Positions 2,609 to 39,426 of a stretch of DNA of 39,426 bases are shown in pieces. Each line of letters begins with the position of its first letter. Within the stretch, counting starts at the first letter, position 1. The notes beneath the pieces were generated by a model that was given only the letters and a program-made list of their open reading frames with translations, made no database searches and had not been told where the DNA came from. Position numbers and translations under genes: made by a program. Source of the stretch: Octopus bimaculoides (Eukaryota); assembly GCF_001194135.2 (NCBI RefSeq), contig NC_068989.1, forward strand, positions 67,076,671-67,116,096, in the 5' to 3' direction.

Positions 2609-3502
2609 TTAAAGAGAAATCCTTGTAAAAATACAAATAAAATGATTTCATAGTAAGTACCTCAATAGAATACATAATATATAAATTTGACTCTTTGAAA
2701 AGCAGGCATCTGTTGTTAACAGCCAGAAACTGGAAGATTGAATATGAAGAACTTAACAGTTGTAACTCATACTAATGATGGCATTTATGGTGCTACAAAG
2801 AAACAAAAAGAAAAAAATGAACATATCTGAAAGGAAATTTATATGTCGAATATTTGAAGAATTTGCTGAAATAGATGACTATTTATTAAGTTTTCAAAAT
2901 AGGTAATGTTTACATATGTATATAGACAGAACCATTGAGCTGTGTCTCTCAGACTAAAATCTCAGGAACTATAAAATGGAAGTTATAATATTCTGTCTCT
3001 TATTCTCTGTATCAAAACTATTAAATCTAATCTAAATATCTGTTGGTTCTTATATTCTTTGTTATTGGAGTGTTACATGATTAATTCTTCTTTGAAATGA
3101 TCTCTTAGTTCTAATATATATGGAAAGTTTAACAGTTTGAATCTTAACCTCATCCTTCCAAGAAGTTTTCAGTTCCATTAAAATTCATCATTATTTAACA
3201 AACTTTTGGAAATTTGGTGGGAAGATTCCTTAGACATTATTGCATAAATATACAAAGTCTCAATCAAATTTAATGTAAGTCTTGTGGACAAGATATGATA
3301 AGACAAGTATCTAAAATCCTTCAAAATATTCTGTTGTAACAATGAAAACTGTAAACTTGTTACTTCATATGTATTAGAATGTTTATGTGATGCAGACTAC
3401 ACTTGGAATTTCTTTTGAATAAAAAAGAATTGTAAATGAATCTGTTGAATTTGTTCATTGTTTAATCCATCTTTTCTTGTGAGATTTGTCCATCACTGTC
3501 AT

Positions 3503-3700
3503 TTTATCAACTACCACCACCACCACCACCACCACCACTATCACCATCACTACCATCAGAGCTATCACTACCACTGCCACCACCATTACCATTACCAACA
3601 ATACCACCACCACAATTATCACCACTTCCACTACCACCTCCACCACTACAATTACCACCACCATCACTACTACTACCACCATTATCATCACTATTACCTC
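3503..3700. repeat. Degenerate (ACC/ATC/ACT)n trinucleotide tract
   Basis: Directly visible. It explains the poly-His, poly-Thr, poly-Val and poly-Gly ORFs at 3455-3802. Confidence 0.95.
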
Positions 3701-3726
3701 TGTTGCCAATATTTTGTATGTTTTCA

Positions 3727-3950
3727 AAGCAGTGAGCTGGCAGAACTGTTAGCATGCCAGGCAAAATACTTAGACACATTTCAGCCGTCTTTACATTCTT
3801 AGTTCAATTTTCACCAAGTCAGTTTTGCCTTTCATCCTTACAGGGTCAATGAAATAAGTACCAGTTGAACACTGGAGTCAATGTAATTGACTTATCCCTG
3901 CCTCTAAAATTGCTGACATTGTGCCAAAATTTGAAATCAGTATTTTGTAT
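3727..3950 (+). mobile_element. tRNA-derived SINE family 2 (head gagctggcaga..gttag; core tttgcctttcatcctt..ggggtcgataaat..agtacc)
   Basis: Other copies at ~8275-8476(-), 8538-8705(+), 12945-13146(-), 21790-21975(-), 23230-23400(-), 24345-24440(-) and 32760-32880(+, degenerate). Confidence 0.8.
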
Positions 3951-4134: not shown

Positions 4135-4274
4135 ATACTTGCTTAGGAACCGCATGGTTCCGGGTTCAGTCCCACTGCGTGGCACCTTGGGCAAGTGTCT
4201 TCTACTATAGCCTTGGGCCGACCAAAGCCTTGTGAGTGGATTTGGTAGACAGAAACTGAAAGAAGCCCATCGTA

Positions 4275-4305
<31 letters not shown>

Positions 4306-4626
4306 NNNNNNNNNNNNNNNNNNNNNNNNNNNNNNNNNNNNNNNNNNNNNNNNNNNNNNNNNNNNNNNNNNNNNNNNNNNNNNNNNNNNNNNNNNNNNNN
4401 NATATATGTATCTGTGTGTGTATGTTTGTGTGTCTGTGTTTGTCCCCCCAACATCGCTTGACAACTGATGGTGGTGTGTTTACATCCCCGTAACTTATCG
4501 GTTCGGCAAAAGAGACTGATAGAATAAGTACTAGGCTTCCAAAGAATAAGTCCTGGGGTCGACTTGCTCGACTAAAGGCGGTGCTCCAGCATGGCCACAG
4601 TCAAATGACTGAAGCAAGTAAAAGAG
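4135..4626 (+). mobile_element. tRNA-derived SINE family 1 (head, internal TA/TG microsatellite, tail)
   Basis: B-box-like GGTTCAGTCCC followed by ggcaccttgggcaagtgtcttctactatagcc...gtggatttggtagac, and the tail ...tcaaatgactgaagcaagtaaaagag. Many copies occur in the window. Confidence 0.85.
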
Positions 4627-4647
4627 TATACATATATATATATATAA

Positions 4648-4808
4648 AACAGGCTTCTTTCAATTTCCATCTACCAAATCCACTCACAGGGCTCTGATCA
4701 CCCTGAGACTATAGTAGAAAACACTTGCCCAAGGTGCCATGCAGTGAGACTGAACCCAGGACCATGTGGCTAAGAACCAAGCTTTTTACCACAGAGTCAC
4801 ACCTGTGA
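4648..4808 (-). mobile_element. SINE family 1 head, inverted relative to 4135-4280
   Basis: caggcttctttcaatttccatctaccaaatccactcac...gactgaaccc...accacagagtcac is the reverse complement of the family-1 head. Confidence 0.8.
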
Positions 4809-4978
4809 CTATATATATTATATTTAGTAAACCTTTAAGTGGCCCATTCTGAATCGTGTTTGTTTGAATTTTGAGAAAATAATTTTTTTCTTGAAATAAA
4901 AACGAGTTAAAATCTATTCAGAAATATTTATTATCAGAAAAACCAAAAAAAAGAAAAAAGAAAAAGATTTGTACAACT

Positions 4979-5392
4979 CTACACATCTGTTATAAGTACC
5001 TCATTTGTAGAAGGCAAAGATTCATCATTATAAACAGCTGTTGTCAAGGTATGGAAAGCATGGATTGCTACTTGATTCACACGGTTCTCTCTCTCTGCTT
5101 TACCATTTGGCATATCTCGGAAAAAGTTCTCAATCAAAGCATCTTCAAGTTGATCTTTCCGTTCAGATTTGAGGTATTTGATAATCATGATAATTATAGC
5201 AGCAGAATAAAACACCAGGACCGCTACAATATATATTAATGCCCCGCTATCAGATGCTTGGCCTTGTCTGTGCACAGCCGGATATTTCCTACTGAAATTT
5301 TCAGGAGGAAACTGTACTGTTCGGAAAGTCTGATTAGGGAAACCTCTGCACAACAAAGCCAACATACTTGAGGTACTGTTTTGAATAACCAT
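4979..5392 (-). CDS. 137-aa single-pass membrane protein without a signal peptide, KCNE-like TM signature; complete single-exon CDS
   Basis: Intact ORF in unique, non-repeat sequence. Kozak context is AAAATGG, and an in-frame TAA lies upstream at 5420-5422. There are three N-terminal sequons (NST, NQT, NFS), one hydrophobic helix (ALIYIVAVLVFYSAAIIIMII), a basic cytosolic flank (KYLKSERK) and a C-terminal TDV. Confidence 0.85.
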   Translation of the reverse strand: MVIQNSTSSMLALLCRGFPNQTFRTVQFPPENFSRKYPAVHRQGQASDSGALIYIVAVLVFYSAAIIIMIIKYLKSERKDQLEDALIENFFRDMPNGKAERENRVNQVAIHAFHTLTTAVYNDESLPSTNEVLITDV

Positions 5393-6368
5393 TTTTTTAT
5401 TGGTGATATTGATTGAGGATTAAGATGAATATTAAGATGCTAATTATAATGATGGTAACATATAATGTTAATCACCTAGAATGTATATTTTCATTTGTGA
5501 ACTTCATACAAAATTACATTTTGTAAATTGTATTAAATTGCACTAAACTTGAAGCACTTATGATTGTTAGGAATGAAAAGCATTTCAGTTCATGTGATAC
5601 CTTGTTGATTGTAGACGGCCAGTATCCAAAGTAGAACATATGCAAGTTCTGTTATATCTCGTAAGTTCTGTCAAACAGTATTGTTAGAAGTTTTTCGTAT
5701 TTATTGTTTGATGATGGAAAATAAATCCTGCTGAATGAGTGACACCATAGCTGCAACCATTCTTGTAAACACCTTGAAAATATTTCAGTAAAAGTCATTG
5801 CTTCAATGTTTTCTCAAAACTTCATATCTCAGTGAAAATTCTGTTTACCAAAATAACTTATTCTTGTATTTTTTTTAATCTTGATATTGCTGTAGTTTTT
5901 TTTATTAAGAACCATTTCAGTTCAAAATAAAACTTCCATGGTTTGAATATTTAAAACTTTGTTTGACCAAAAATTTCTGAAATAGAAATAAAACAGTAAT
6001 TTAAAAAAATAAAATCATTCAAATTTGATTAAGATTTCAAAATCTATAAGTCTCATTAGAATTGCCAAGAACAATCTTGAAGTTAATTAGTTAATAACAT
6101 TTTTTTGTCTTTGGTCAGTAAGTGGTGTTTCTTATATATATANNNNNNNNNNNNNNNNNNNNNNNNNNNNNNNNNNNNNNNNNNNNNNNNNNNNNNNNNN
6201 NNNNNNNNNNNNNNNNNNNNNNNNNNNNNNNNNNNNNNNNNNNNNNNNNNNNNNNNNNNNNNNNNNNNNNNNNNNNNNNNNNNNNNNNNNNNNNNNNNNN
6301 NNNNNNNNNNNNNNNNNNNNNNNNNNNNNNNNNNNNNNNNNNNNNNNNATATATATATATATATATAT

Positions 6369-9555: not shown

Positions 9556-9762
9556 TGGTTAAAAGTTTGTTGAAGTGGTAGAGAAAGAGAGAAATATAAA
9601 GAGCTTAGCAGAGGGAAATTTTAACATATAATATATTATTGTGACTCAAAGTGAAATACTTGGCAAAATAACAATATAAATGCAAATCACTCTTTTTTTC
9701 TTAAATAGCTTCTCTTAATTTTTTTCTTTCTGTAGAATTTCCATGGTCACACTAGTCTATAT

Positions 9763-10093
9763 ATACTCTTTTACTTGTTTCAGTCATTTGACTGCAGCCA
9801 TGCTGGAGCACCACCTTTAGCCAAGCTAATCAACCCCAGGACTTATTCTTTGTAAGCCTAGTACTTATTCTATCAGTCTCTTTTTGCCAAACCGCTAAGT
9901 TACCGGGACATAAACACACCAGCATCGGTTGTCAAGCGATGGTGGGGGGACAAACACAGACACACATACATATATATATATATACGTATATACGACAGAC
10001 TTCTTTCAGTTTCCGTCTACCAAATCCACTTACAAGGCTTTGGTTGACCCGAGGCTATAGTAGAAGACACTTGCCCAAGGTGCCACGCAGTGG
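9763..10093 (-). mobile_element. SINE family 1, 5'-truncated
   Basis: tactcttttacttgtttcagtcatttgactg...gctatagtagaagacacttgcccaaggtgccacgcagtgg. Confidence 0.85.
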
Positions 10094-11599: not shown

Positions 11600-11780
11600 A
11601 CACACACACACACACACAATGGGCTTCTTTCACTTTTTGTCTACCACATCCACTCACAAGTTTTTTTTATCAAACCAGAGCTATATTAGAAAGCACTTGC
11701 CCATGTTGCCATGCAATGAGACTAAACCCAAATCCATGAGGTTGAAAATTGAACTTCTAAACCACACAGCCATGCCTGTA
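11600..11780 (-). mobile_element. SINE family 1 head
   Basis: gggcttctttcactttttgtctaccacatccactcacaag...cttctaaaccacacagccatgcctgtacc. Confidence 0.75.
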
Positions 11781-14770: not shown

Positions 14771-16854
14771 CAAAATTCAGGATCACAACACATAAATACA
14801 CTGCAACACAATTCCTTTTCCTCAATGTGCCAGCATGCCACACTGTCATCGTTCTGGCTAATCTTAGCAAATGCCCATGACAACAACGCCAGACACAATT
14901 CACTTCTGCACTCTTTTCAAGGCATTTTGCACAAAATGCAATCCTGCAAGAAAACTTTTGCTGATATTATGGATTGAGAATGCAAACACTCAATACAGCT
15001 TATTCCACAGCTGCAGGATTTTCTCTTGCACTCATGTATACGCCCTTGCATGCTCATTCACGCAACGACTGGCACATTTTGCACTCATGCACATGCTCAT
15101 TCACTCTGCCTCAGTCACACACCAACTGGCATATTCTGCATCCTTTATTCAACTGATATATATAAGTGGTGTCATTTATTTCAAATATTCTGGAGAAACA
15201 TGTCTGGTCATGGAGAAATACTATTTTGTTTGTAAACAGATGAGGATTGGTAATAAGAAAGGCTTTTGACCATGAAAAAACTACCTCAATAAATGTCATC
15301 TGACCCATGCAAGCTTGGAAAAGTGGAAGTTAAAATGACACAGATGATTATATTTGTGTGTGTGTGTGTGTAAGTCATCTAAGAGTCCATAAGTCAGGAA
15401 AAAATGCTCTCATATATCTGTCAATAGAGTGAGTATATTATCCGAAATGTACAGTATTATATATCCATTATGACTAATCCCTACATTAACGGTATTAATA
15501 TAATTATTAAGAGTTACAATCTAAAAATATAGTATTATAGTAAACAAAGTTAAAACATTATGGAATAAGTAGATAATAGTAAAAAAATGTGTTAGTGTAC
15601 AAAGTTACTAAAAGACGGATGTCAATATTGTTTATAAAATTAAAATAAGAAAACATGACTTATCTGCCGGTTGGTAACTGTAAATTAAAACAAAATGACT
15701 TTGCTATAGAATTTATACTAAAAGGTCACGTGATAAATATGGCATCTATTACCCAGAAGTACATGCGTATTATAATTACTAAAATAATAACGAAAATATC
15801 GAAAAAGAAAATCTACCTAAAATAAAACCCATACGAAAATTCTATATTACGTAAATAATGCTATGAAAATTAATACTGAAAAGTCACGTGATAAACAGAG
15901 GTAAGTACGTGTTATAATTACTAAAATAATAACGAAAATATCAAAAAAGAAAATCTACCTAGAATAAAAAGTTTAATGAAGATTAATAATACTAAAATAC
16001 TTAAAACTCTCAGATTTACGTAGAATAATAACTATGCCAAATACGAAAGTTATATATTACTTAAATAATGTTATGAAACATTGTAAAAGACTGCTCATAT
16101 TATCGTTGAATACTTAAAGTAAAGGTAGTTATATGTTCCAATATTGTATAATATTGTGATGATTAAAGTGTATTCTAAAGCTATGTAGATGTATTTTACG
16201 ATACTGATCATAACTATAAGTTGGTACCTAATGCTAGGTTTAAAAATAAATTAGTTATCTAAACTTATTATATAAGTAATTTAATTTATGTCTGCATTTA
16301 ATATTACGTTCCTCGTGGGAGTTAATCAATTTTTTATTAATTAATAATATCTCTTTAAATTCGTTAGTACATAATAAGCAGAATTTATTCCCTATCCTAT
16401 ATGATTTAGTATATGATTTATTTATGTAATATGTTATTTAATTTAAATTTTTAGATTAAAATATTAGATATTAGGATAGTATATGCCTCACAGCATGGAT
16501 TTGGATGGGTTCTGAGTTGTAGAGTGGTGGTTCGTCTTTAAATTAGTTATATATATATATATATATANNNNNNNNNNNNNNNNNNNNNNNNNNNNNNNNN
16601 NNNNNNNNNNNNNNNNNNNNNNNNNNNNNNNNNNNNNNNNNNNNNNNNNNNNNNNNNNNNNNNNNNNNNNNNNNNNNNNNNNNNNNNNNNNNNNNNNNNN
16701 NNNNNNNNNNNNNNNNNNNNNNNNNNNNNNNNNNNNNNNNNNNNNNNNNNNNNNNNNNNNNNNNNNNNNNNNNNNNNNNNNNNNNNNNNNNNNNNNNNNN
16801 NNNNNNNNNNNNNNNNNNNNNNNNNNNNNNNNNNNNNNNNNNNNNNNNNNNNNN

Positions 16855-18106: not shown

Positions 18107-18664
18107 NNNNNNNNNNNNNNNNNNNNNNNNNNNNNNNNNNNNNNNNNNNNNNNNNNNNNNNNNNNNNNNNNNNNNNNNNNNNNNNNNNNNNNNNNNNNNN
18201 NNNNNNNNNNNNNNNNNNNNNNNNNNNNNNNNNNNNNNNNNNNNNNNNNNNNNNNNNNNNNNNNNNNNNNNNNNNNNNNNNNNNNNNNNNNNNNNNNNNN
18301 NNNNNNNNNNNNNNNNNNNNNNNNNNNNNNNNNNNNNNNNNNNNNNNNNNNNNNNNNNNNNNNNNNNNNNNNNNNNNNNNNNNNNNNNNNNNNNNNNNNN
18401 NNNNNNNNNNNNNNNNNNNNNNNNNNNNNNNNNNNNNNNNNNNNNNNNNNNNNNNNNNNNNNNNNNNNNNNNNNNNNNNNNNNNNNNNNNNNNNNNNNNN
18501 NNNNNNNNNNNNNNNNNNNNNNNNNNNNNNNNNNNNNNNNNNNNNNNNNNNNNNNNNNNNNNNNNNNNNNNNNNNNNNNNNNNNNNNNNNNNNNNNNNNN
18601 NNNNNNNNNNNNNNNNNNNNNNNNNNNNNNNNNNNNNNNNNNNNNNNNNNNNNNNNNNNNNNNN

Positions 18665-18712
<48 letters not shown>

Positions 18713-19424
18713 GTATAATATATTTATATATATATATTCCTACATGCACACACACACACGCACACATACATACATGCATATATATATATATATTAATATA
18801 CTTATATATATATGCATATGTATATTTTTTCAGTGTGTTTAACATTTAAAAACATGTTAAAAGATATAATCAAAAGTGTGCCATTATATAGAACAGCTAA
18901 CAACAGGTATAAATACACCTGGAAAGTGTATTACTTTCTTGCTGTTCACAGAAATCAATTACAGATCATTTCTATTGAAGTTATTTGACACTGCTATTCC
19001 TATCAGGTTTCTTTGGTTGGCAATGGTGTTAATTATTAGCAGGAATTCACAGCAGCTATAGCTAATTCACTTGATAACAAGGAAGTGTTTACGCTGTCGA
19101 AACCAATAATAAGAGCTATCAACCACTTTCTGACTGCTTCATGCTTCCATGGGAATTTATGCCAAGACATATTACAAAACTAAATAAATTTTACTTTGCT
19201 GATTTACCTTCTGTGAAATTTAGCTTTAGTTTTATTTTAAGGAAATTATTCTTCTGTATTTCTGGAAGTATGTTCTAAATATACTGATCCAACTGTCCTC
19301 CCTTATATATGTGTGTGTGTGTGTGTTTACGCACATGTATACATACACACAAACACACACATACACATTTATATTTACATACATACGTATGTACATGTAA
19401 ACTTACATATATATGTATACATAT

Positions 19425-19426
<2 letters not shown>

Positions 19427-19510
<84 letters not shown>
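19427..19510. repeat. (GT)n microsatellite
   Basis: Directly visible. Confidence 0.95.
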
Positions 19511-19512
<2 letters not shown>

Positions 19513-20094
19513 CCTCATCATCATCATCACCAATGTGATCATTTTAATATTCACTTTTTATGCTTGCATGGGTCAGTTAGAGTTTATTATGGCAGATTTT
19601 CTATGGCTGGATGCCCTTCCTATGGCCAACCTTCATCTGTTTCAGAGTAAAGTAATATTCCCTTCCCCATGGGGCCAGTCAGGCAGTCCTGGCATCAATC
19701 ATATATATATATATATATGTTTTCCTGGCAGACTGGAAATGAAGAACTACTTGTATGCTGGGAATACTCATTCACAACAATCACATGATATCAAGGCAAA
19801 GAAACACAAACACACATACACACATGTACACATACACACACGTGTGTGTGTGTGCGCGTGTGTGTGTGTGCGCGTGTGTGTGTGTGTGGCAGATTAGTAC
19901 GTTTTTGTTGTTAAACTATCATTTAACCTCTTGTTACCACATTTCTAACAAAGCACACTGCTCCTATATTCCAATAATAGTCATCAATGAGAAAGGATTT
20001 AATGAAATAATTAATTTTTTCATTAATTGGTACATCAAGTTAGTGTATAGAACCTAACTTAACAAATGGTTGATATATGATAAATATGTGATAC

Positions 20095-20290
20095 TCTTTT
20101 ACTCTCTTTTACTCTTTTACCTGTTTCAGTCATTTGACTGTGGCCATGCTGGAGCACCACCTTTAGTCAAGCAAATCGACTCCAGGACTTATAGCAGAAG
20201 ACACTTGCCCAAGGTGCCATGTAGTGGGACTGAACCCAGAACCATGTAGTTGGTAAGCAAGCTACTTACCACACAGCCACTCCAGTGCCT
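20095..20290 (-). mobile_element. SINE family 1, internally deleted (tail fused directly to head)
   Basis: ...gcaaatcgactccaggacttat|agcagaagacacttgcccaaggtgcc...; the middle of the consensus is missing. Confidence 0.75.
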
Positions 20291-21285: not shown

Positions 21286-22448
21286 TACACCAAGAAACAT
21301 ATTGTGCTCTTGCCCTTTCTCTCATACTTCAACCTTCGACTCCTAGCATAAAGCTGCCCACCTCAGGCCAAATTGTAAAAGCAGCCTCACTAGTGCTGGT
21401 GCTGGTATCCAGTCATAGAAACCATACAAAAGCAGACACTGGCATATAACACAATACCTGGACTATTTAGATCCTATCAAACCATTCCACCCATATCAGC
21501 AAAGAACATGGACATTAAATGATGATGACAAAGGTAATGATGTTTAAAGTTAACCACCAATTCTATCAAACACAGATATACACTCATGTCACCGTCATTG
21601 CAAAACAATCAAACAAGAATTCTTCATTTGCAGGAATAGAACTTCAAATTCAATCCATTAAATGCAGGTTTATAATCTTTTTATGTCTGACATGTCTAAA
21701 AGTTCTACGAGCTTTTCATTCCTGATACATTTAGAAAGCACTTAAACACTGTCAAATTATGTTCTTATATTGATTCAAATTTTGGCAGAAATTCTGTAAT
21801 TTCAAGGGAGTGGGTAAGTTGATTATATTGACCCTAGTGTTCAACTGGTACTTATTTTATCGACCCCCAAGAAGATGAAAGGCAAAGTTGACCTAAAGTT
21901 GAATTTGAACTCAGAACATGAAGATGGACGAAATACTGCTAAGCATTTTGTCTGGTGTGCTAATGGTTCTGCCAGCATGCCACCTTAAAATATGTTCTTA
22001 TATTATTTACACACTAAAGCATTACCATGATCTGATGGGTAACTTTGGAAGTACATTTTTGCCACTATGGATAATATCAAGAAATATGGTAAAACATTCA
22101 ATAACCTTTTGCAGAACCCAGTTGAGAAACACTGCTCTGTATAAATAAAAAGTATGAGTGGAGGATCAGCCACCAACTCAATCAACTGACCAACCAGCCA
22201 ACTGACTGACCAACCAGCCGACCAACCAACATTTATATTGGTTTATATTAAATGTGTATTATCATAGAAATTTATTTCTGATCTGAATGGAAATATCAAT
22301 ATCGGCACCAGAGGAACCATTGCTTCATATTTATATTCAATAAATCTGTGTTTATGAATGAATGAATGTTCTGGGTAGTCCAAATCTAATAAATATAGAA
22401 GGAAAATAACGTGTGTGTATGTATGTGTGTTTGCGTACATATATATAT

Positions 22449-23150
22449 CATTTCATATACACGGATGATTTAAAGCTCTTTGCCAAAAATGACCAACAAC
22501 TACAGGGCTTACAAGGAATTGTTAAACAATTCAGTGATGATATCAGGATGCAATTTGGCCTTGATAAATGTGCAAAAGCTACTTTTGTCAAAGGAAAAAT
22601 GACAGAAAAATTCAACGTTAATCTTGACCAACAGAATGTCATAAAAAGGTTAGAACCAGCAGAGAGCTACAAATACCTAGGGGTATTTGAAGGTGATGGA
22701 ATCAAACATTCAATGATGAGGGAAAGGATCAGAAGGGAATGTTATCACAGAATAAGGACAATACTCAAGACAGGGCTGAATGCAAGAAACAGGATCAAAG
22801 CGATCAATACTTTAGCCATATCAGTCATGACTTACAGTTTCGATATTATTAACCGGCCAATTACTGAAATGTGTAATCTTGACAGAAAAATACGAAAATC
22901 ATTGACAATGCATAGAATGCACCACCCAAATGCAGATATAGAATGACTTTACCTGCCAAGAAAAGAGGGTGGCCGTAGACTTTTACAACTGGAATTAACA
23001 ATGAGGATTGTCACAATTGGTCTAGACACCTACCTGAAAAACTCTGAAGACTGGATGTTAAAACTTGTCTCAAAGCATGAAAACAAGAAAGCATCATACT
23101 CAGTAACAAAACAAGGCACAGGAATATATAAGTGAATTCCAAAGTCTCTG
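22449..23150 (+). mobile_element. R4/Dong-clade non-LTR retrotransposon RT fragment
   Basis: YTDDLKLFAK...DDIRMQFGLDKCA...YKYLGV...IKAINTLA..VMTYSFDII...LDRKIRKSLTMHRMHHPNADIE*LYLPRKEGG matches R4/Dong RT motifs (YMDDLKL, FGLDKCA, HPRADVDRLYLPRKEGGRGL). Confidence 0.85.
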
Positions 23151-27738: not shown

Positions 27739-27885
27739 ACATGTTTGATCGTGTGGGATTTTACATCTATGATGTGTGACAGCTGGGCCAACCAATGTCT
27801 TGCAAGTAGATTTGGTAGACAGAAAGTGAAAGCAGCCCATTGCATATATATATATATAATATATATATGTGTGTGTGTGTGTATG

Positions 27886-29495: not shown

Positions 29496-31343
29496 TAATT
29501 AGAAAATTATTTTACTTAATTTTGTCAGCAAAAATGTGTTTTATGTAAATGTGGTTAGTGAGAGGATTAGTCCAACAAGAAATTTAATCAAATAATGGCA
29601 TTAGACTTTTCTTTGCCATTAAACAATTGCAAAATAAATATTGTAAGTGTTATTATATCAATGGGTTAACGTCATACAGAAGACATCCAATATAATGACA
29701 TGAATAAATGAGGAAAGAGTGGGTGTGAGAGAGAGAGTGAGAGACAGAGACAGAAGGATGGATAGACAGAGACAAAACAGAGTGGGAAAGAGAAAGAATG
29801 AGACAGACAGAGAGGGAGGAACAGACAGACAGACAGAGATCAGAATTCACAGCCATATAGAAAAGCATACTTAGAAAGACAACACAAAAAATACTTTCGA
29901 CAAAGCAACAATTGAATGAAGTGCAAAGAAACTTGATTAATTTGCCAATTCTTGAATAACAAAATACAGAACTACAAATACTGGAGTGAGTTCCATTATT
30001 CAGTAGAGACCAAAGAATATCAGGAATCCTTAAAAGAGACTCAAGACAGTAGATTTGAAACAAAATCAGAAACTAATCAGGATGTTTGTGAATAGAAGTG
30101 AATAAATTCTATAATTCTATTCTTAATTGACATATAAAATGAATAATATACTGTCTGCAACCTCATTTTACACACATACGCCCACCCACCCCCACACACA
30201 TATTGAGTTAACCCTTTTGCAGGCAGAACTACATTTTGATTATGTTTGTCACAGCTCAATGTAAAGCATTCTCATTTTGGTTGATTGTTGAGTATTAAAC
30301 GGTTGTTAATGTATTGAAACAATGCTAGAGAACCCCAGCAGAATTCTTTGTGATTTGCATGTCATTAATATGTCATTATGACATAATTATAACAGTACAT
30401 TTAAAGATTTAAATGCTACAAAAGCACATAAACAGTGCCGAGAGGTTCTTGCCAGCCTATCTGCAAAAGGCAGCCTTCAAGTACATTCTATGCTTTTCCT
30501 TTCTGAAAAAAGTGAAATATGAAGAAATTGGAGGGGGAATTGAAATTTTTAAATGCTAGTTTTTTTACAGATTCAGAATCTCTGTAGATAAAAACCTGGG
30601 TTTCTGTAGAAAAAAAAATGGAAGTGAATGTGGTGACGGTCCGCCTTGTACACCCCTAAGATTTTGATTCAGTCTGCAAGTTGGATAATATGTTCCACGT
30701 GGTTTTGTATTATGACAAATGAAGTAATTGCTTGGTAAAAATATCATGTTTTGTTTTGTTAGTTTTTATATATGATTAAATGACTTGTTTTAAGACAAAA
30801 TATTTACATGCAAATTTTCTGAAAATTGTTTACCCACAACACAAAGGTTTTAAAAAATTATCTATCTTCTAGCATCCACTTTTCCTTGCTTACATGGGTC
30901 AGATGGAATATGTTGATGTATATTTTCTGTGGCTGGTTGCCATTGCTGAGTAAATNNNNNNNNNNNNNNNNNNNNNNNNNNNNNNNNNNNNNNNNNNNNN
31001 NNNNNNNNNNNNNNNNNNNNNNNNNNNNNNNNNNNNNNNNNNNNNNNNNNNNNNNNNNNNNNNNNNNNNNNNNNNNNNNNNNNNNNNNNNNNNNNNNNNN
31101 NNNNNNNNNNNNNNNNNNNNNNNNNNNNNNNNNNNNNNNNNNNNNNNNNNNNNNNNNNNNNNNNNNNNNNNNNNNNNNNNNNNNGGTTACCATAGAAAAA
31201 TATTACCTTGCTTGTTTCCACTCAAGGTAAATATTTCCCCATGTTTTTCATGAAAGACTTGAAACAAACAACAAAACATGATTGGCAGTGAAGCTCATTA
31301 ACAACCATCATGTGATGTCAAGACACACAAACACACACATATA

Positions 31344-32236: not shown

Positions 32237-32655
32237 ATGGCTTTATGGCAAGGAGTTTGCTTCCCAACCATGTGGTCCCAGGTTCAGTCCCACAACATGG
32301 CACCTTGGGCTAGTGTCTTCTACCATAACCTTGTGAGTGGATTTGGTAGGCAAAAACTAAAAGAAACCCATCATATGAATGTGTGTGTGAGTGTGTATGT
32401 GTGTGTGTGTGTGTGTGTGTGCGAGCATATGTGTGTGTGTCAGTTTTTGTCCACCACCACTGCTTGACAACCAGTGTTGGTGTGTTTACATCCCCATAAC
32501 TTAGTGGTTTAGCAAAAGAGAAGGATAGAATAAATAGCCAACTTAAAAAAAAAGTGCAACAAAATGCTGGGGTTGATTTGCTCAACTAAAATTCTTCAAG
32601 GTGGTGCCCCAACATGGCCTCAGTCTAATGACTGAAACAAGTAAAAGATAAAAGA
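32237..32655 (+). mobile_element. SINE family 1, near full length
   Basis: Head atggctttatggcaaggag...ggttcagtccc, an internal (TG)n, and the tail ...atgactgaaacaagtaaaag. Confidence 0.85.
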
Positions 32656-33624: not shown

Positions 33625-34135
33625 TTGGGAAGTAAACTACTTAACCACACAACCATACCAGTAAAAGATATTTTGTTGCTTAAATGATAAAATTTTAGGT
33701 ATGACTGTGTGGATAGGCACAGGTGTGGCAGTGTGGTAAAGAAGTTTACTTCCCAACCACATGGTTACAGGTTCAGTCCCACTGTGTGACACCTTGGGTA
33801 AGTGTCTTCTACAATAGCCTTGGTCTAACCAAAGCCTTGTGAGTGGATTTGGTAAACAGAAACATGAAAGAGGCTTTCTGTGGATTTGTGGGTATGTGTG
33901 TGTGTGTGTCTTTATGTCTGTGTTTGTCCCCCAACCATCACTTGACAACCAATGTTTGTGTGTTTACATCCCCATAACTTAGTGGTTCAGCAAAGAAGGC
34001 CAATAGAATTAGTACTATTTATTCTTTATTCAAAGAATAAATCCTGGGGTCACTTTCTTTGACTAAAAGAAAAGCCTTTAAGTTGGTGCTCCAGCATGAC
34101 CATGGCCACAGTCAAATGACCTAACAAGTAAAGGA
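33625..34135. mobile_element. SINE family 1: short minus-strand head (33625-33665) followed by a full plus-strand copy (33712-34135)
   Basis: ataggcacaggtgtggcagtgtggtaaag...ggttcagtcccactgtgtg...tcaaatgacctaacaagtaaagg. Confidence 0.8.
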
Positions 34136-36880: not shown

Positions 36881-36939
36881 GTAAAACACACCCAAGATAG
36901 ATTAGTGAGATAGTGTGTCTTTTATGCTATAAAATACAG

Positions 36940-37338
36940 GCACAGATATGGCTGTGTGGCAAGAAGCTTGCTTCCCAACCACATGGTCTCAGGTTCAGTC
37001 CCATTGTGTGGAACCTTGGGCAAGTGTCTTCTACTATAGCTTTGAGCCAACTAAAGCCTTGTGTGTGGATTTGGTAGACAGAAACTGAAACAAACCCATC
37101 ATGTGTGTATATACATATATAAACACACCAACACTGGTTGTCAAGAAGTGGTGGAAGACAAATACAGATATATATATGATGGGGTTCTTTCAGTTTCTGC
37201 CTACCAAATCCACTCACAAGGCTTTGATCAGCTTAAGGCTATAGTAGAAGACACTTTCCCAAGGTGCCACACAATGGGACTGAACCCGGAACCATGAGGT
37301 TAGGAAGCAAGCTTCTTACCACATACCCATGCCTGTAC
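36940..37338. mobile_element. Two SINE family 1 heads in inverted, tail-to-tail orientation
   Basis: Plus head 36940-37100 and minus copy 37120-37338; ~160-bp complementary arms separated by ~75 bp. Confidence 0.85.
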
Positions 37339-37644: not shown

Positions 37645-38636
37645 TTAGGAAATAATAGATAATTTAGCATAACGATAGTCTAATGATTTAATACTTCTGA
37701 CCAAAATTATAGATTTGGAATTTGGTAACAGCTCTTCCAAACCAACTAAAGAACAAAATCCAATGCCAACACCAGAAGCCTTTAAAAAAGAGTATCTCCC
37801 TGTTGTAAGAAATCCAATAATCTTTCGTGATGTACTTGACAATGGAAGTAACTGACCCGTCCCATTTTTTAGTTGGGCTTCACACAATCTTGATGGCTTT
37901 GTTATTTTCTTTTCTTCACATTCTTTGCTCTCTCTTTTGACTTTGTGTAGTGGTTCTTTAACATCTGCTGCTTTCTGAGATTTCAGATTTACAAGATCCC
38001 TTTTCAAGGGCACACAAATCATTGAACAGTGCTCTGGAACCCCTTTAGATATCATTTCTACAATTACTGGTACTATGGCCTGCTTGTAAAAACCATCTCC
38101 AACAAAATGTTTTGAAATTTTCAATTTGGAATCATTAGTAGATGATATTAATCTACTTAGAGCAATTAGTTTTTTACGGTCTCTCAACACACAAAACTTC
38201 TGAATGATGTCTTTATTTAGTCCTTGTACCAAGGAAAGATAATCCGTATAAAAAGGAATGGGAATGCCAAGCCGCTCAAAATTGGGTCGCTTACTTGGTG
38301 GTCGTTGCATATAAACCTCCAGTTTGTTTGTTTGTATCACAGACATTTCAGCAAGTCCAGCATCTGTATCGGGATAGTCAAATGGAAAATATAACTCCCC
38401 TACTTCTAATGATGTCCGATAGGCTTCAGAAAGAGCACCCACCTGAGCACCTTGATACACTAGAGCTATCCAAAATGCCATTCCCCATCCAGCCGGAAGT
38501 ATGATGTCACAGCCGTTTCCAAGCCGAGGGTTTGCAAAAGTAGACTTACAAGGCTGATGTAATGACTGTATTCCTGGTCTCTGAATTAAAAGCATTGGAA
38601 TTCGAGATGAAGAATCTAGAAGATGCAACTGATAAC
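37645..38636 (-). CDS. POP1: Terminal coding exon of ribonuclease P/MRP protein subunit POP1 (POPLD domain plus C-terminal domain)
   Basis: Motifs IPMLLIQRPG, GWGMAFWIALVYQG, FPFDYPDT, RPPSKRPNF..LG and the C-terminal IIGFLTTGRYS...GIGF...ILVRS...YRYA match POP1. The ORF-track Met at 38679 is intronic; the exon starts after the acceptor ttttctgtttcag|GT at 38636. AATAAA signals lie on the minus strand at 37574-37579 and 37589-37594. Confidence 0.95.
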
Positions 38637-39426
38637 CTGAAACAGAAAATATATAAATCAATATTTTTCTAAAAGCCATTTTAAAATGTTAGCAAAAATT
38701 TATATTTTAAGCATAGAATACATATGACAGTTCAATAAAAACACACACAGTCTGATGTATGTAAAGTAATGGTTGTATGTGACTTAGAAGTTTCTCAACT
38801 ATGTTGCTTTGAGCTCAATCTCACCGCACAACACCTTGGCTTTTTTCTTTATAGACCTAGTTTAACCAATACCTTGTGATGGAATTTCATAGATGAAAAC
38901 TGAAAGGTGTGAATGTGTGTGAACATTTAGAATCTGCACTGAGCTGCATACAGAGAAAATTAAATCAAGACAATCATAAAGGAGAATGGAGGATTATACA
39001 TCTCCAAAAATTTATTTATTGAAGCATTATTCTCCTCAAATTCCAATCCAACACGTTTCTGCTAGATAAGTGCCCTAGCATCCTTTGACACAATTTTAAG
39101 AGAATTAGAGAATTCACTGGTAGGAACCTAATAAGCACAAATAATAGAACTAACATAAATAGTAATGATATGACTGGTTATAACAACAACTACGTGGATA
39201 TGTAGAATATAAATATGTGTCTCCCGGAACCCATCTAGTGGCCTTGGCCATAGTCTCCCCTACATTTGGGTAGCGCATAAAGTTTGAGTAATGTTTGCAG
39301 GTTGTAGGTACTGTTTTGCTTATGAATTCTTCCAATTGCAAGTTTTCTTTTCAGGTACACGACACTGCTTTTCCCCTTCCCAGGCTACAGGCCCACACCC
39401 CCAACACCCATACTGTTAGGATTGGC

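Follow-up and report, generated by a model that had tools for sequence, protein, structure and literature searches.

A probable distant relative of the KCNE potassium channel subunits encoded by an intronless gene of Octopus bimaculoides

Are the KCNE proteins, the small single-pass subunits that modulate voltage-gated K+ (Kv) channels, truly confined to vertebrates? No canonical KCNE genes are recognized in invertebrates, and the family is considered to have arisen in early vertebrates (PMC11659587, PMC13516689, PMC3206303); experiments using Ciona KCNQ1 as a KCNE-naive channel were built on the same vertebrate-only premise. The question is raised by a stretch of 39,426 nucleotides of Octopus bimaculoides DNA (assembly GCF_001194135.2, contig NC_068989.1, positions 67,076,671 to 67,116,096), referred to here as the window, which carries a small intronless gene at 4979..5392 on the minus strand. 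A first-pass annotation, made from the letters alone, regarded KCNE proteins as a vertebrate family, in agreement with papers up to 2026, and proposed that this gene may encode a lophotrochozoan homologue or analogue. In this work, we find that the family to which the octopus gene belongs is probably homologous to vertebrate KCNE, because three independent resources, namely Pfam, the PDB sequences, and a permutation-controlled profile comparison, single out KCNE alone. No description of this family was found in the literature under KCNE combined with mollusc, amphioxus, or protostome terms, under PF02060, or under LOC115216824, the name of an Argonauta orthologue.

The product of 4979..5392 (minus strand) is MVIQNSTSSMLALLCRGFPNQTFRTVQFPPENFSRKYPAVHRQGQASDSGALIYIVAVLVFYSAAIIIMIIKYLKSERKDQLEDALIENFFRDMPNGKAERENRVNQVAIHAFHTLTTAVYNDESLPSTNEVLITDV (translation, 137 amino acids, aa), probably a KCNE-related single-pass membrane protein. 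The features of the gene, all on the minus strand, are as follows.

4979..5392, minus strand: complete single-exon coding sequence of 137 aa plus a TAG stop (stop codon 4979-4981), with an ATG start
5243..5392, minus strand: N-terminal ectodomain, residues 1-50, with three sequons and a short helix at residues 6-15
5372-5380, minus strand: sequon N5-S-T, in the ectodomain
5327-5335, minus strand: sequon N20-Q-T, in the ectodomain
5291-5299, minus strand: sequon N32-F-S, in the ectodomain
5180..5239, minus strand: transmembrane (TM) helix L52-I71, LIYIVAVLVFYSAAIIIMII, from hydropathy and the AlphaFold2 (AF2) model; core of the KCNE similarity
5156..5179, minus strand: cytoplasmic juxtamembrane segment K72-K79 (KYLKSERK), aligning with KCNE1 S64-L71 (SYIRSKKL)
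5021..5104, minus strand: predicted cytoplasmic helix, residues 97-124, with the subfamily motif VNxVAIxAFHTLT, from the AF2 model
4982..4993, minus strand: C-terminal I-T-D-V, a class-I PDZ-binding motif pattern ([ST]-x-hydrophobic at the carboxyl end)
4927..4932, minus strand: AATAAA polyadenylation signal, 47 nt 3' of the stop codon

The main traits proposed in the first-pass annotation were recovered: translation gave the intact open reading frame (ORF) of 137 aa with its three N-terminal sequons, the first at N5 (N5ST, N20QT, and N32FS), while hydropathy (L52-I71) and AF2 agreed on one TM helix followed by a cytoplasmic tail. The protein has a single hydrophobic segment (best 19-residue Kyte-Doolittle window 2.87, from residue 53), after which comes a charged tail of about 65 aa. 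Its N-terminus is weakly hydrophobic (best 10-residue window 1.47) and bears the sequon at N5, consistent with the predicted lack of a cleavable signal peptide, as judged on hydropathy alone. The start codon is flanked by A at -3 and G at +4, and the block around the AATAAA signal, CTGATAATAAATATTTCTGAAT, is conserved in a related octopod contig (L002).

The first step is to establish whether this ORF is a gene. The window is AT-rich, repeat-masked eukaryotic DNA (about 30-39% GC), and the length of the ORF could by itself be a product of chance, given that the window contains others of 130-136 aa. A chance ORF or a decaying pseudogene in AT-rich, repeat-rich intergenic DNA would fit with these other ORFs, which arise by chance in the window, with the dispersed repeats lying within 150-500 nt downstream, and with the fact that no transcript evidence was obtained. 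The sole matching contig, from Logan, is colinear with the genome over 730 nt upstream and, for this reason, neither proves nor excludes transcription or splicing. A scan for bacterial promoters and terminators gave a shuffle-level result at the locus, although such a scan is irrelevant to a eukaryotic gene.

The gene is counted as real because it is conserved, and not because of its length. A word-indexed search retrieved the orthologue in the Logan contig (137 aa, 96% identical) and one in Argonauta hians ('uncharacterized protein LOC115216824', 82% identical), the latter called as a single uninterrupted coding sequence of 414 nt; the contig index contains no protein identical to the octopus one. 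All three sequons are invariant in both of these close orthologues, and the I-T-D-V end is identical. In a comparison with Argonauta, DNA similarity rises at the ATG and collapses directly after the stop codon. The ratio of non-synonymous to synonymous substitution rates (dN/dS, Nei-Gojobori) against Argonauta is 0.081 overall at a synonymous divergence (dS) of about 1.2, being 0.26 in the ectodomain (codons 1-46) and 0.021 in the TM helix plus tail; within residues 97-124, all changes are synonymous except N122S. Against the closer octopod, the ratio is 0.077, with zero non-synonymous changes in codons 47-137. The dN/dS comparison among octopods suggested in the first-pass annotation thus gave about 0.08, that is, strong constraint. 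Intactness in three octopod genomes or contigs stands against chance or decay as well, and the idea is effectively refuted by this ratio at such a dS, by conservation bounded by the start and stop codons, and by 144 relatives across phyla. The octopus gene is real, functional, and under strong purifying selection.

These relatives were collected in an exhaustive HMMER search, in which the three octopod sequences were used as a profile against 1.84 billion cluster representatives, giving 144 relatives at E<=1e-3 and 37 at E<=1e-10. Those with source names are all 'uncharacterized' or 'hypothetical'. Besides cephalopods, they include gastropods (Arion vulgaris, Nucella lapillus, Patella vulgata, and Elysia crispata), the bivalve Mya arenaria, the barnacle Amphibalanus amphitrite, the decapods Penaeus vannamei, two Petrolisthes species, Scylla paramamosain, Panulirus ornatus, and Procambarus clarkii, and the amphioxus species Branchiostoma lanceolatum and B. 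belcheri. The decapod names were contributed by a word-indexed search with an 85-sequence profile, which gave at least 13 matches. No nematode was found among the relatives carrying a source name, and no second family member was found elsewhere in the window. The family is therefore a previously unnamed one, present in molluscs, crustaceans, and amphioxus; of the lophotrochozoan KCNE homologue first proposed, the relationship to KCNE is supported, but the restriction to lophotrochozoans is not.

All members have a common core, D-x-G-A-[LV]-[LM]-Y-I-V-x-V-L-x-F-Y-S-x-G-I-x-x-M-I-x-K-Y-L-K-x-E-[RK]-x-E-x-E-E-E, and they diverge in the cytoplasmic domain. The octopus protein belongs to a mollusc-type group with VNxVAIxAFHTLT, a motif kept across mollusc relatives, and an [ST]-D-[VL] end. 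Other groups carry RLALxALN...KVTFV, a long tail with [FY]RVQ ending in VT[SN]V, 'EFVKRD', or, in decapods, FYEDYL. In gastropod members, long low-complexity cytoplasmic tails extend the protein to as much as 400-770 aa, with the PDZ-type end still kept. In Mya arenaria (LOC128213220 and LOC128213221; P0009 and P0152) and Elysia crispata (RRG08_046323 and RRG08_046324; P0094 and P0292), the locus numbers of two members are consecutive and fall on one contig, an arrangement suggestive of tandem duplication in the bivalve and the sea slug.

The KCNE relationship becomes visible when the family is compared with Pfam (24,736 models). ISK_Channel (PF02060) is the Pfam family matched by most members, 23/43, with a best E of 3.2e-5; the runner-up, the obviously unrelated bacterial CrgA, is matched by 18/43 (best E 1.2e-3). 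Among 63 distinct homologues scanned in detail, ISK_Channel is again the model matched most often and with the highest scores, and five pass its gathering threshold of 22.1 bits: P0010 (24.1 bits, residues 2-77 on model positions 2-72), the Penaeus shrimp protein P0143 (25.2 bits, with a precomputed PF02060 tag in its source database), the Petrolisthes protein P0295 (22.3 bits), P0136 (28.3 bits, model positions 26-93 of 126), and P0125 (24.4 bits, model positions 43-119 of 126). The last two belong to the 'EFVKRD' subfamily and are the only members whose alignment also covers cytoplasmic positions of the model; among the invertebrate groups, this subfamily may stand nearest to the vertebrate KCNEs. 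P0136 and P0125 come from ENA contigs of 508 and 573 nt, and the sole named member of the subfamily, amphioxus P0127, has no Pfam match. No better match to another small-membrane-protein family emerged from the Pfam scans, and FXYD, phospholemman-type, and other small single-pass families were absent from the matches of all 63 homologues.

For the octopus protein itself, membership of ISK_Channel holds by transitivity only; judged strictly, it falls outside the Pfam family. Searched alone, it gave no ISK_Channel match at E<=10, and neither did its Argonauta orthologue at E<=1. The Pfam check proposed in the first-pass annotation thus had a divided outcome, negative for the protein in question and positive for its relatives. 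The matches that the octopus protein did give were not meaningful: DUF6249, DUF2973, and Spore_YhaL in Pfam at E<=10 (all E>0.1), a plant TM family in NCBIfam (E=0.06), and mitoribosomal uL14 among PDB sequences (E about 0.5). When a 43-member profile was compared with 177,635 distinct PDB sequences, the top four were KCNE2 (2m0q, E=0.18) and KCNE3 (6v01, 9wd8, and 2ndj, E about 0.6-0.7), all aligned TM on TM in the same register.

Profile-profile comparison, which was also recommended at the outset, gave 94-96.6% probability against KCNE. To assemble the KCNE set, human KCNE1-5 were used as search bait only; the search returned 883 matches at E<=0.001, and the best 120 of the 883 are KCNE1, KCNE3, KCNE4, and KCNE5. 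With human KCNE2 added to this set, hhalign aligned a 146-sequence family core at 96.6% probability (E 6.3e-10) over 87 columns, running from the N-terminal sequon to the juxtamembrane turn, and trimmed alignments gave 96.5% (E 8e-10, score 58.3). A comparison of database sequences only gave 94.1% (E 1.3e-7, 71 columns), placing octopus residues 4-80 on KCNE1 residues 6-75, N-terminus on N-terminus and sequon on sequon. Five subfamily groups, compared independently, each reached 93.5-95.8%, and an octopod-only profile reached 81.6%.

The main rival explanation bears directly on these scores. It holds that these single-pass, PDZ-anchored proteins arose independently of KCNE and serve, for instance, as auxiliary or trafficking subunits in receptor, transporter, or adhesion complexes located at Dlg-type scaffolds, and that the TM resemblance results from physical constraints, namely interfacial tyrosines, an aromatic/small-residue packing motif, and the positive-inside rule. 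Permutation controls were made by shuffling columns of the family alignment and rerunning hhalign, 120 times per scheme and 480 times in total, against the real score of 58.3.

All columns shuffled: 10.8+-2.4, maximum 18.9
Shuffled within ectodomain, TM, and cytoplasmic blocks (architecture and composition kept): 20.1+-4.5, maximum 32.1
Only the 20 TM columns shuffled: 33.4+-5.6, maximum 48.1
Only the flanks shuffled: 34.9+-3.0, maximum 44.9
Reversed family alignment: 21.2

Because no shuffle (0/480) reached the real score, the similarity to KCNE is position-specific in the helix and its flanks, rather than a generic pattern of a TM segment followed by basic residues. Convergence would have difficulty explaining why block-wise permutation, which keeps the architecture, lowers the score from 58 to 20+-4.5, and why shuffling either the TM columns or the flanks is enough to lose score. 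In the cephalopod-only set, the separation is narrow: it scores 39.9, against a mean of 19.2+-4.3 for 40 block-shuffled controls, whose maximum of 39.0 is barely exceeded.

The positions behind this similarity can be counted as offsets from the first Tyr (octopus Y54, KCNE1 Y46, and KCNE3 Y60), with 14 TM types on the KCNE side.

Offset 0: family Y 100%; KCNE Y 14/14
Offset 1: family I 97%; KCNE I/V 13/14
Offset 4: family V 83%; KCNE V 10/14
Offset 5: family L 95%; KCNE L/M 13/14
Offset 7: family F 94%; KCNE F 11/14
Offset 8: family Y 99%; KCNE F/Y 14/14
Offset 9: family S 88%; KCNE G/A/S 14/14
Offset 19: family Y 94%; KCNE Y 13/14
Offset 21: family K/R 91%; KCNE R/K 14/14
Offset 24: family R/K 82%; KCNE K/R 14/14

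All ten belong to the KCNE signature Y-[IV]-L-x-V-[LM]-x-F-[FY]-[GAS]...Y-x-[RK]-S-[KR]-[KR], of which offsets 22 and 23 differ in most of the family. The columns common with KCNE are also the most conserved ones across the 146 relatives, including the Y..VL.FY...Y[IL][KR] pattern singled out in the first-pass annotation. The ungapped KCNE1 register proposed there coincides with KCNE1 from the database (P0167) at Y0, V4, L5, F7, aromatic 8, Y19, I/L20, R/K21, S22, and D30, and hhalign found the same register on its own. At offset 30, the acidic residue is kept (KCNE1 D76, octopus D84).

What these positions might do was approached through the predicted structure and the conservation pattern. 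The AF2 model, based on a 43-sequence alignment, contains a helix at residues 6-15, a long helix at 47-93, a helix at 97-124, and a disordered end. The predicted local distance difference test (pLDDT) score is above 90 over residues 51-80 and 89-96 per ten-residue block over 51-90, and the predicted template modelling (pTM) score is 0.33, the model consisting of three isolated helices. The same order of helices occurs in KCNE proteins. Across the family, sequon density falls from 3.99 per 100 aa ahead of the TM helix to 0.60 behind it (about 6.6-fold), and 128/136 members have at least one sequon ahead of the helix. This difference in density is consistent with an N-terminus-outside topology, and the ectodomain of the octopus protein carries three putative N-glycan sites. 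Within the helix, conservation follows a 100-degree periodicity (moment 0.177, shuffled 0.070+-0.033, P=0.0006), so that one face is constrained, as expected for a helix packing on a partner protein. At offsets -3, +1, +5, and +9, the family has A, I, L, and S (86-96%), and the corresponding residues of KCNE3 are S57, I61, M65, and A69. In the cryo-EM complex, these four KCNE3 residues, as well as G73 and I76, lie along S1 of KCNQ1, and modulation requires them (PMC9671499). This overlap between the conserved face and the KCNE3 contacts should be treated as a lead rather than a result.

Several observations weigh against homology with KCNE and lend convergence some ground. The similarity spans 40-87 columns, about half of them membrane-embedded, and does not reach beyond the N-terminal ectodomain, the TM helix, and the first turn on the cytoplasmic side; an interfacial Tyr at each end of the helix with basic residues after it is in part a general trait of single-pass proteins. 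The invariant KCNE Ser at offset 22 (S68) is R/T/K in most relatives, although the octopus protein has Ser, and at offset 23 the charge is reversed, with Glu in 93% of the family and Lys/Arg in KCNE. P77 and the cytoplasmic motif DP[FY]xxYI are not conserved in the family; at the site of KCNE [SN]-D-P-[FY]-x-x-Y-I, the octopus protein reads K-D-Q-L-E-D-A-L-I-E-N-F-F, with no Pro at 31 and no Y-I at 35-36. KCNE offers no equivalent of its conserved cytoplasmic helix or of its PDZ ligand. Most homologues other than the five score 12-21 bits to ISK_Channel, below the cut-off, and unrelated TM families reach 19-20 bits (CrgA 19.4, TMEM154 19.7). For this reason, sub-threshold single Pfam matches carry little weight, and the CrgA and TMEM154 matches (up to 19.7 bits) were treated as noise level. 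The PDB matches have E values of 0.18-0.73, and the KCNE profile is mammal-only, all its named sequences being mammalian. Conservation of the six-position S1-facing set does not significantly exceed that of the remaining TM positions (P=0.07). A Foldseek search of the AF2 model against PDB gave no match, which is uninformative for such a fold. The missing expression evidence for the octopus gene, mentioned above, counts on the same side.

Taken together with the permutation results, other findings speak against convergence: the rank of ISK_Channel among 24,736 Pfam models, the occupation of the top four places among 177,635 PDB sequences by KCNE2 and KCNE3, the agreement of the five subfamily groups, and the alignment of the N-terminal sequon and helix in addition to the TM segment. 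We regard convergence as unlikely, though it deserves serious attention, and homology with vertebrate KCNE as the preferred reading.

Comparison with known systems shows how far this relationship extends. Vertebrate KCNE1-5 (as well as KCNE6 and lamprey KCNE0), the MinK/MiRP beta subunits of KCNQ1 and further Kv channels, resemble the octopus protein in their size of about 100-170 aa, single TM helix, outside N-terminus, no obvious signal peptide, a short ecto-helix preceded by a sequon at about N5, an acidic residue a few positions before the helix, and a coding sequence in one exon, in addition to the TM register (Y0, I/V1, V4, L/M5, F7, F/Y8, small residue 9, Y19, R/K21, and K/R24). In contrast, the activation-triplet positions of the octopus protein are aliphatic (A-I-I), its cytoplasmic domain is a different conserved helix (VNxVAIxAFHTLT), and the taxa of its family are invertebrate. 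The most fitting description of the octopus protein is a divergent invertebrate offshoot of the KCNE type, with a tail of its own and a PDZ ligand.

Other invertebrate proteins have already been called KCNE-like. C. elegans MPS-1 to MPS-4 are single-pass, MiRP-related subunits of KVS-1/KHT-1 (PMC4210162, PMC13516689), and their TM domain is sufficient for a complex with a Kv channel (PMC4210162, PMC13516689). MPS-1, a protein of 256 aa with a disordered tail and a disputed kinase activity, has been described as nematode-specific (PMC4210162, PMC13516689). Compared by description only, these proteins share with the octopus protein their single-pass, KCNE-like character in an invertebrate, while MPS-1, with its length and disordered tail, differs from the 137-aa octopus protein. 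No C. elegans MPS protein appeared among the PDB sequence hits of the family profile.

The C-terminus of the octopus protein adds a further element. Among the relatives, 88/146 (60%) end in [ST]-x-[VLIF], a pattern with a background frequency of 3.4%; the ends include TFV (19), TDV (12), TSV (10), SDV (8), and TNV (8), among others, and many members without such an end look like truncated models. T-D-V is a ligand of the kind seen in Shaker/Kv1 channels, whose E-T-D-V end binds PSD-95/Dlg, and the octopus I-T-D-V likewise conforms to the carboxy-terminal [ST]-x-V motif. Sharing such a short linear motif is not a sign of homology, and in the octopus it lies on a putative auxiliary, rather than a pore-forming, subunit. 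To our knowledge, vertebrate KCNEs have no C-terminal PDZ ligand. The pattern argues for anchoring to a Dlg/PSD-95-type scaffold.

This allows another interpretation, in which a true KCNE homologue has shifted from gating to the role of a scaffold adaptor, with the PDZ ligand serving clustering or trafficking and the TM helix acting as a mere anchor. Such a shift is compatible with the strongest constraint lying in the TM helix plus tail (dN/dS 0.02), with the VNxVAIxAFHTLT helix motif and T-D-V end kept across molluscs, and with T-D-V being of the Shaker/Kv1 E-T-D-V type. However, a mere anchor needs neither a strictly conserved helix face nor near-invariant residues at the KCNE3-S1 contact positions, and we consider a pure adaptor role improbable.

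By analogy with KCNE, the most likely mechanism is that the octopus protein binds and modulates a Kv channel. The conserved helix face would pack on the alpha subunit of a voltage-gated K+ channel (KCNQ or another Kv), as in KCNE, possibly in the cleft between the voltage-sensor S1 and the neighbouring pore domain. Packed in this way, the subunit could tune the gating or trafficking of the channel, while the C-terminal T-D-V would tether the complex to a Dlg/PSD-95-type PDZ scaffold. We lean towards this combined interpretation, in which this functional, intronless locus encodes a small membrane glycoprotein, a distant KCNE homologue with a Kv-channel partner and a PDZ tether.

The surroundings of the gene consist largely of repeats. 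A SINE-like (short interspersed element) dispersed repeat occurs at 4470-4830, with further copies at 4150-4292, 9758-10092, 11622-11730, 20110-20287, 27805-27857, 32273-32648, 33713-34132, and 36928-37323; the copies are 77-93% identical and lie on both strands, and one is located 150-500 nt 3' of the stop codon of the KCNE-like gene. Spurious ORFs of this repeat ('...LPNPLTRLW...GTEPGTM...') recur among the ORFs of the window. Several other long 'ORFs' are artefacts of runs of N (4306-4401, 6143-6348, 16568-16854, 18107-18664, and 30956-31184), which are masked or unresolved and flanked by (TA)n/(TATA)n-type microsatellites. Two low-complexity ORFs were rejected as simple-repeat artefacts and not genes: a His/Tyr-rich one from CAT/CAC repeats at 3458-3802 (plus strand) and a Cys/Val-rich one from (TG)n at 19309-20057 (plus strand).

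Two other ORFs can be placed. At 37645-38679 (minus strand), an ORF of 344 aa with Pfam POPLD (E 1e-26) and POP1_C (E 2e-32) matches most likely represents the large coding exon at the 3' end of the gene for the RNase P/MRP subunit POP1; it is on the same strand as the KCNE-like gene, about 32 kb away. At 22413-22946 (plus strand), an ORF of 177 aa with a sub-threshold RVT_1 match (23.5 bits, cut-off 29.6) looks like a degraded retroelement fragment. In Argonauta, the gene called closest to the orthologue belongs to the SIR2 (sirtuin) family and lies on the opposite strand (L001 16874-20414, minus strand, contig BAAFZT010000018.1); a sirtuin ORF was not noticed in the octopus window, so that synteny with Argonauta is not established.

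Even if the resemblance to KCNE were convergent, the locus would still represent an unannotated, strongly constrained, PDZ-linked membrane protein family. If the homology is true, the origin of KCNE-class channel regulators moves back to the bilaterian ancestor. The evidence leaves evenly poised a broader scenario, in which the KCNE superfamily was already present in that ancestor and paralogous subfamilies survive in molluscs, crustaceans, and amphioxus, most of them with a PDZ ligand that was lost in vertebrates; the octopus gene would then be a cephalopod member coupling a Kv channel to gating modulation and a Dlg-type synaptic scaffold. With homology, the family would also supply naturally occurring variants with which to work out the TM positions that form the KCNE-channel interface, as well as a new candidate channel subunit for the neurophysiology of cephalopods, molluscs, and crustaceans.

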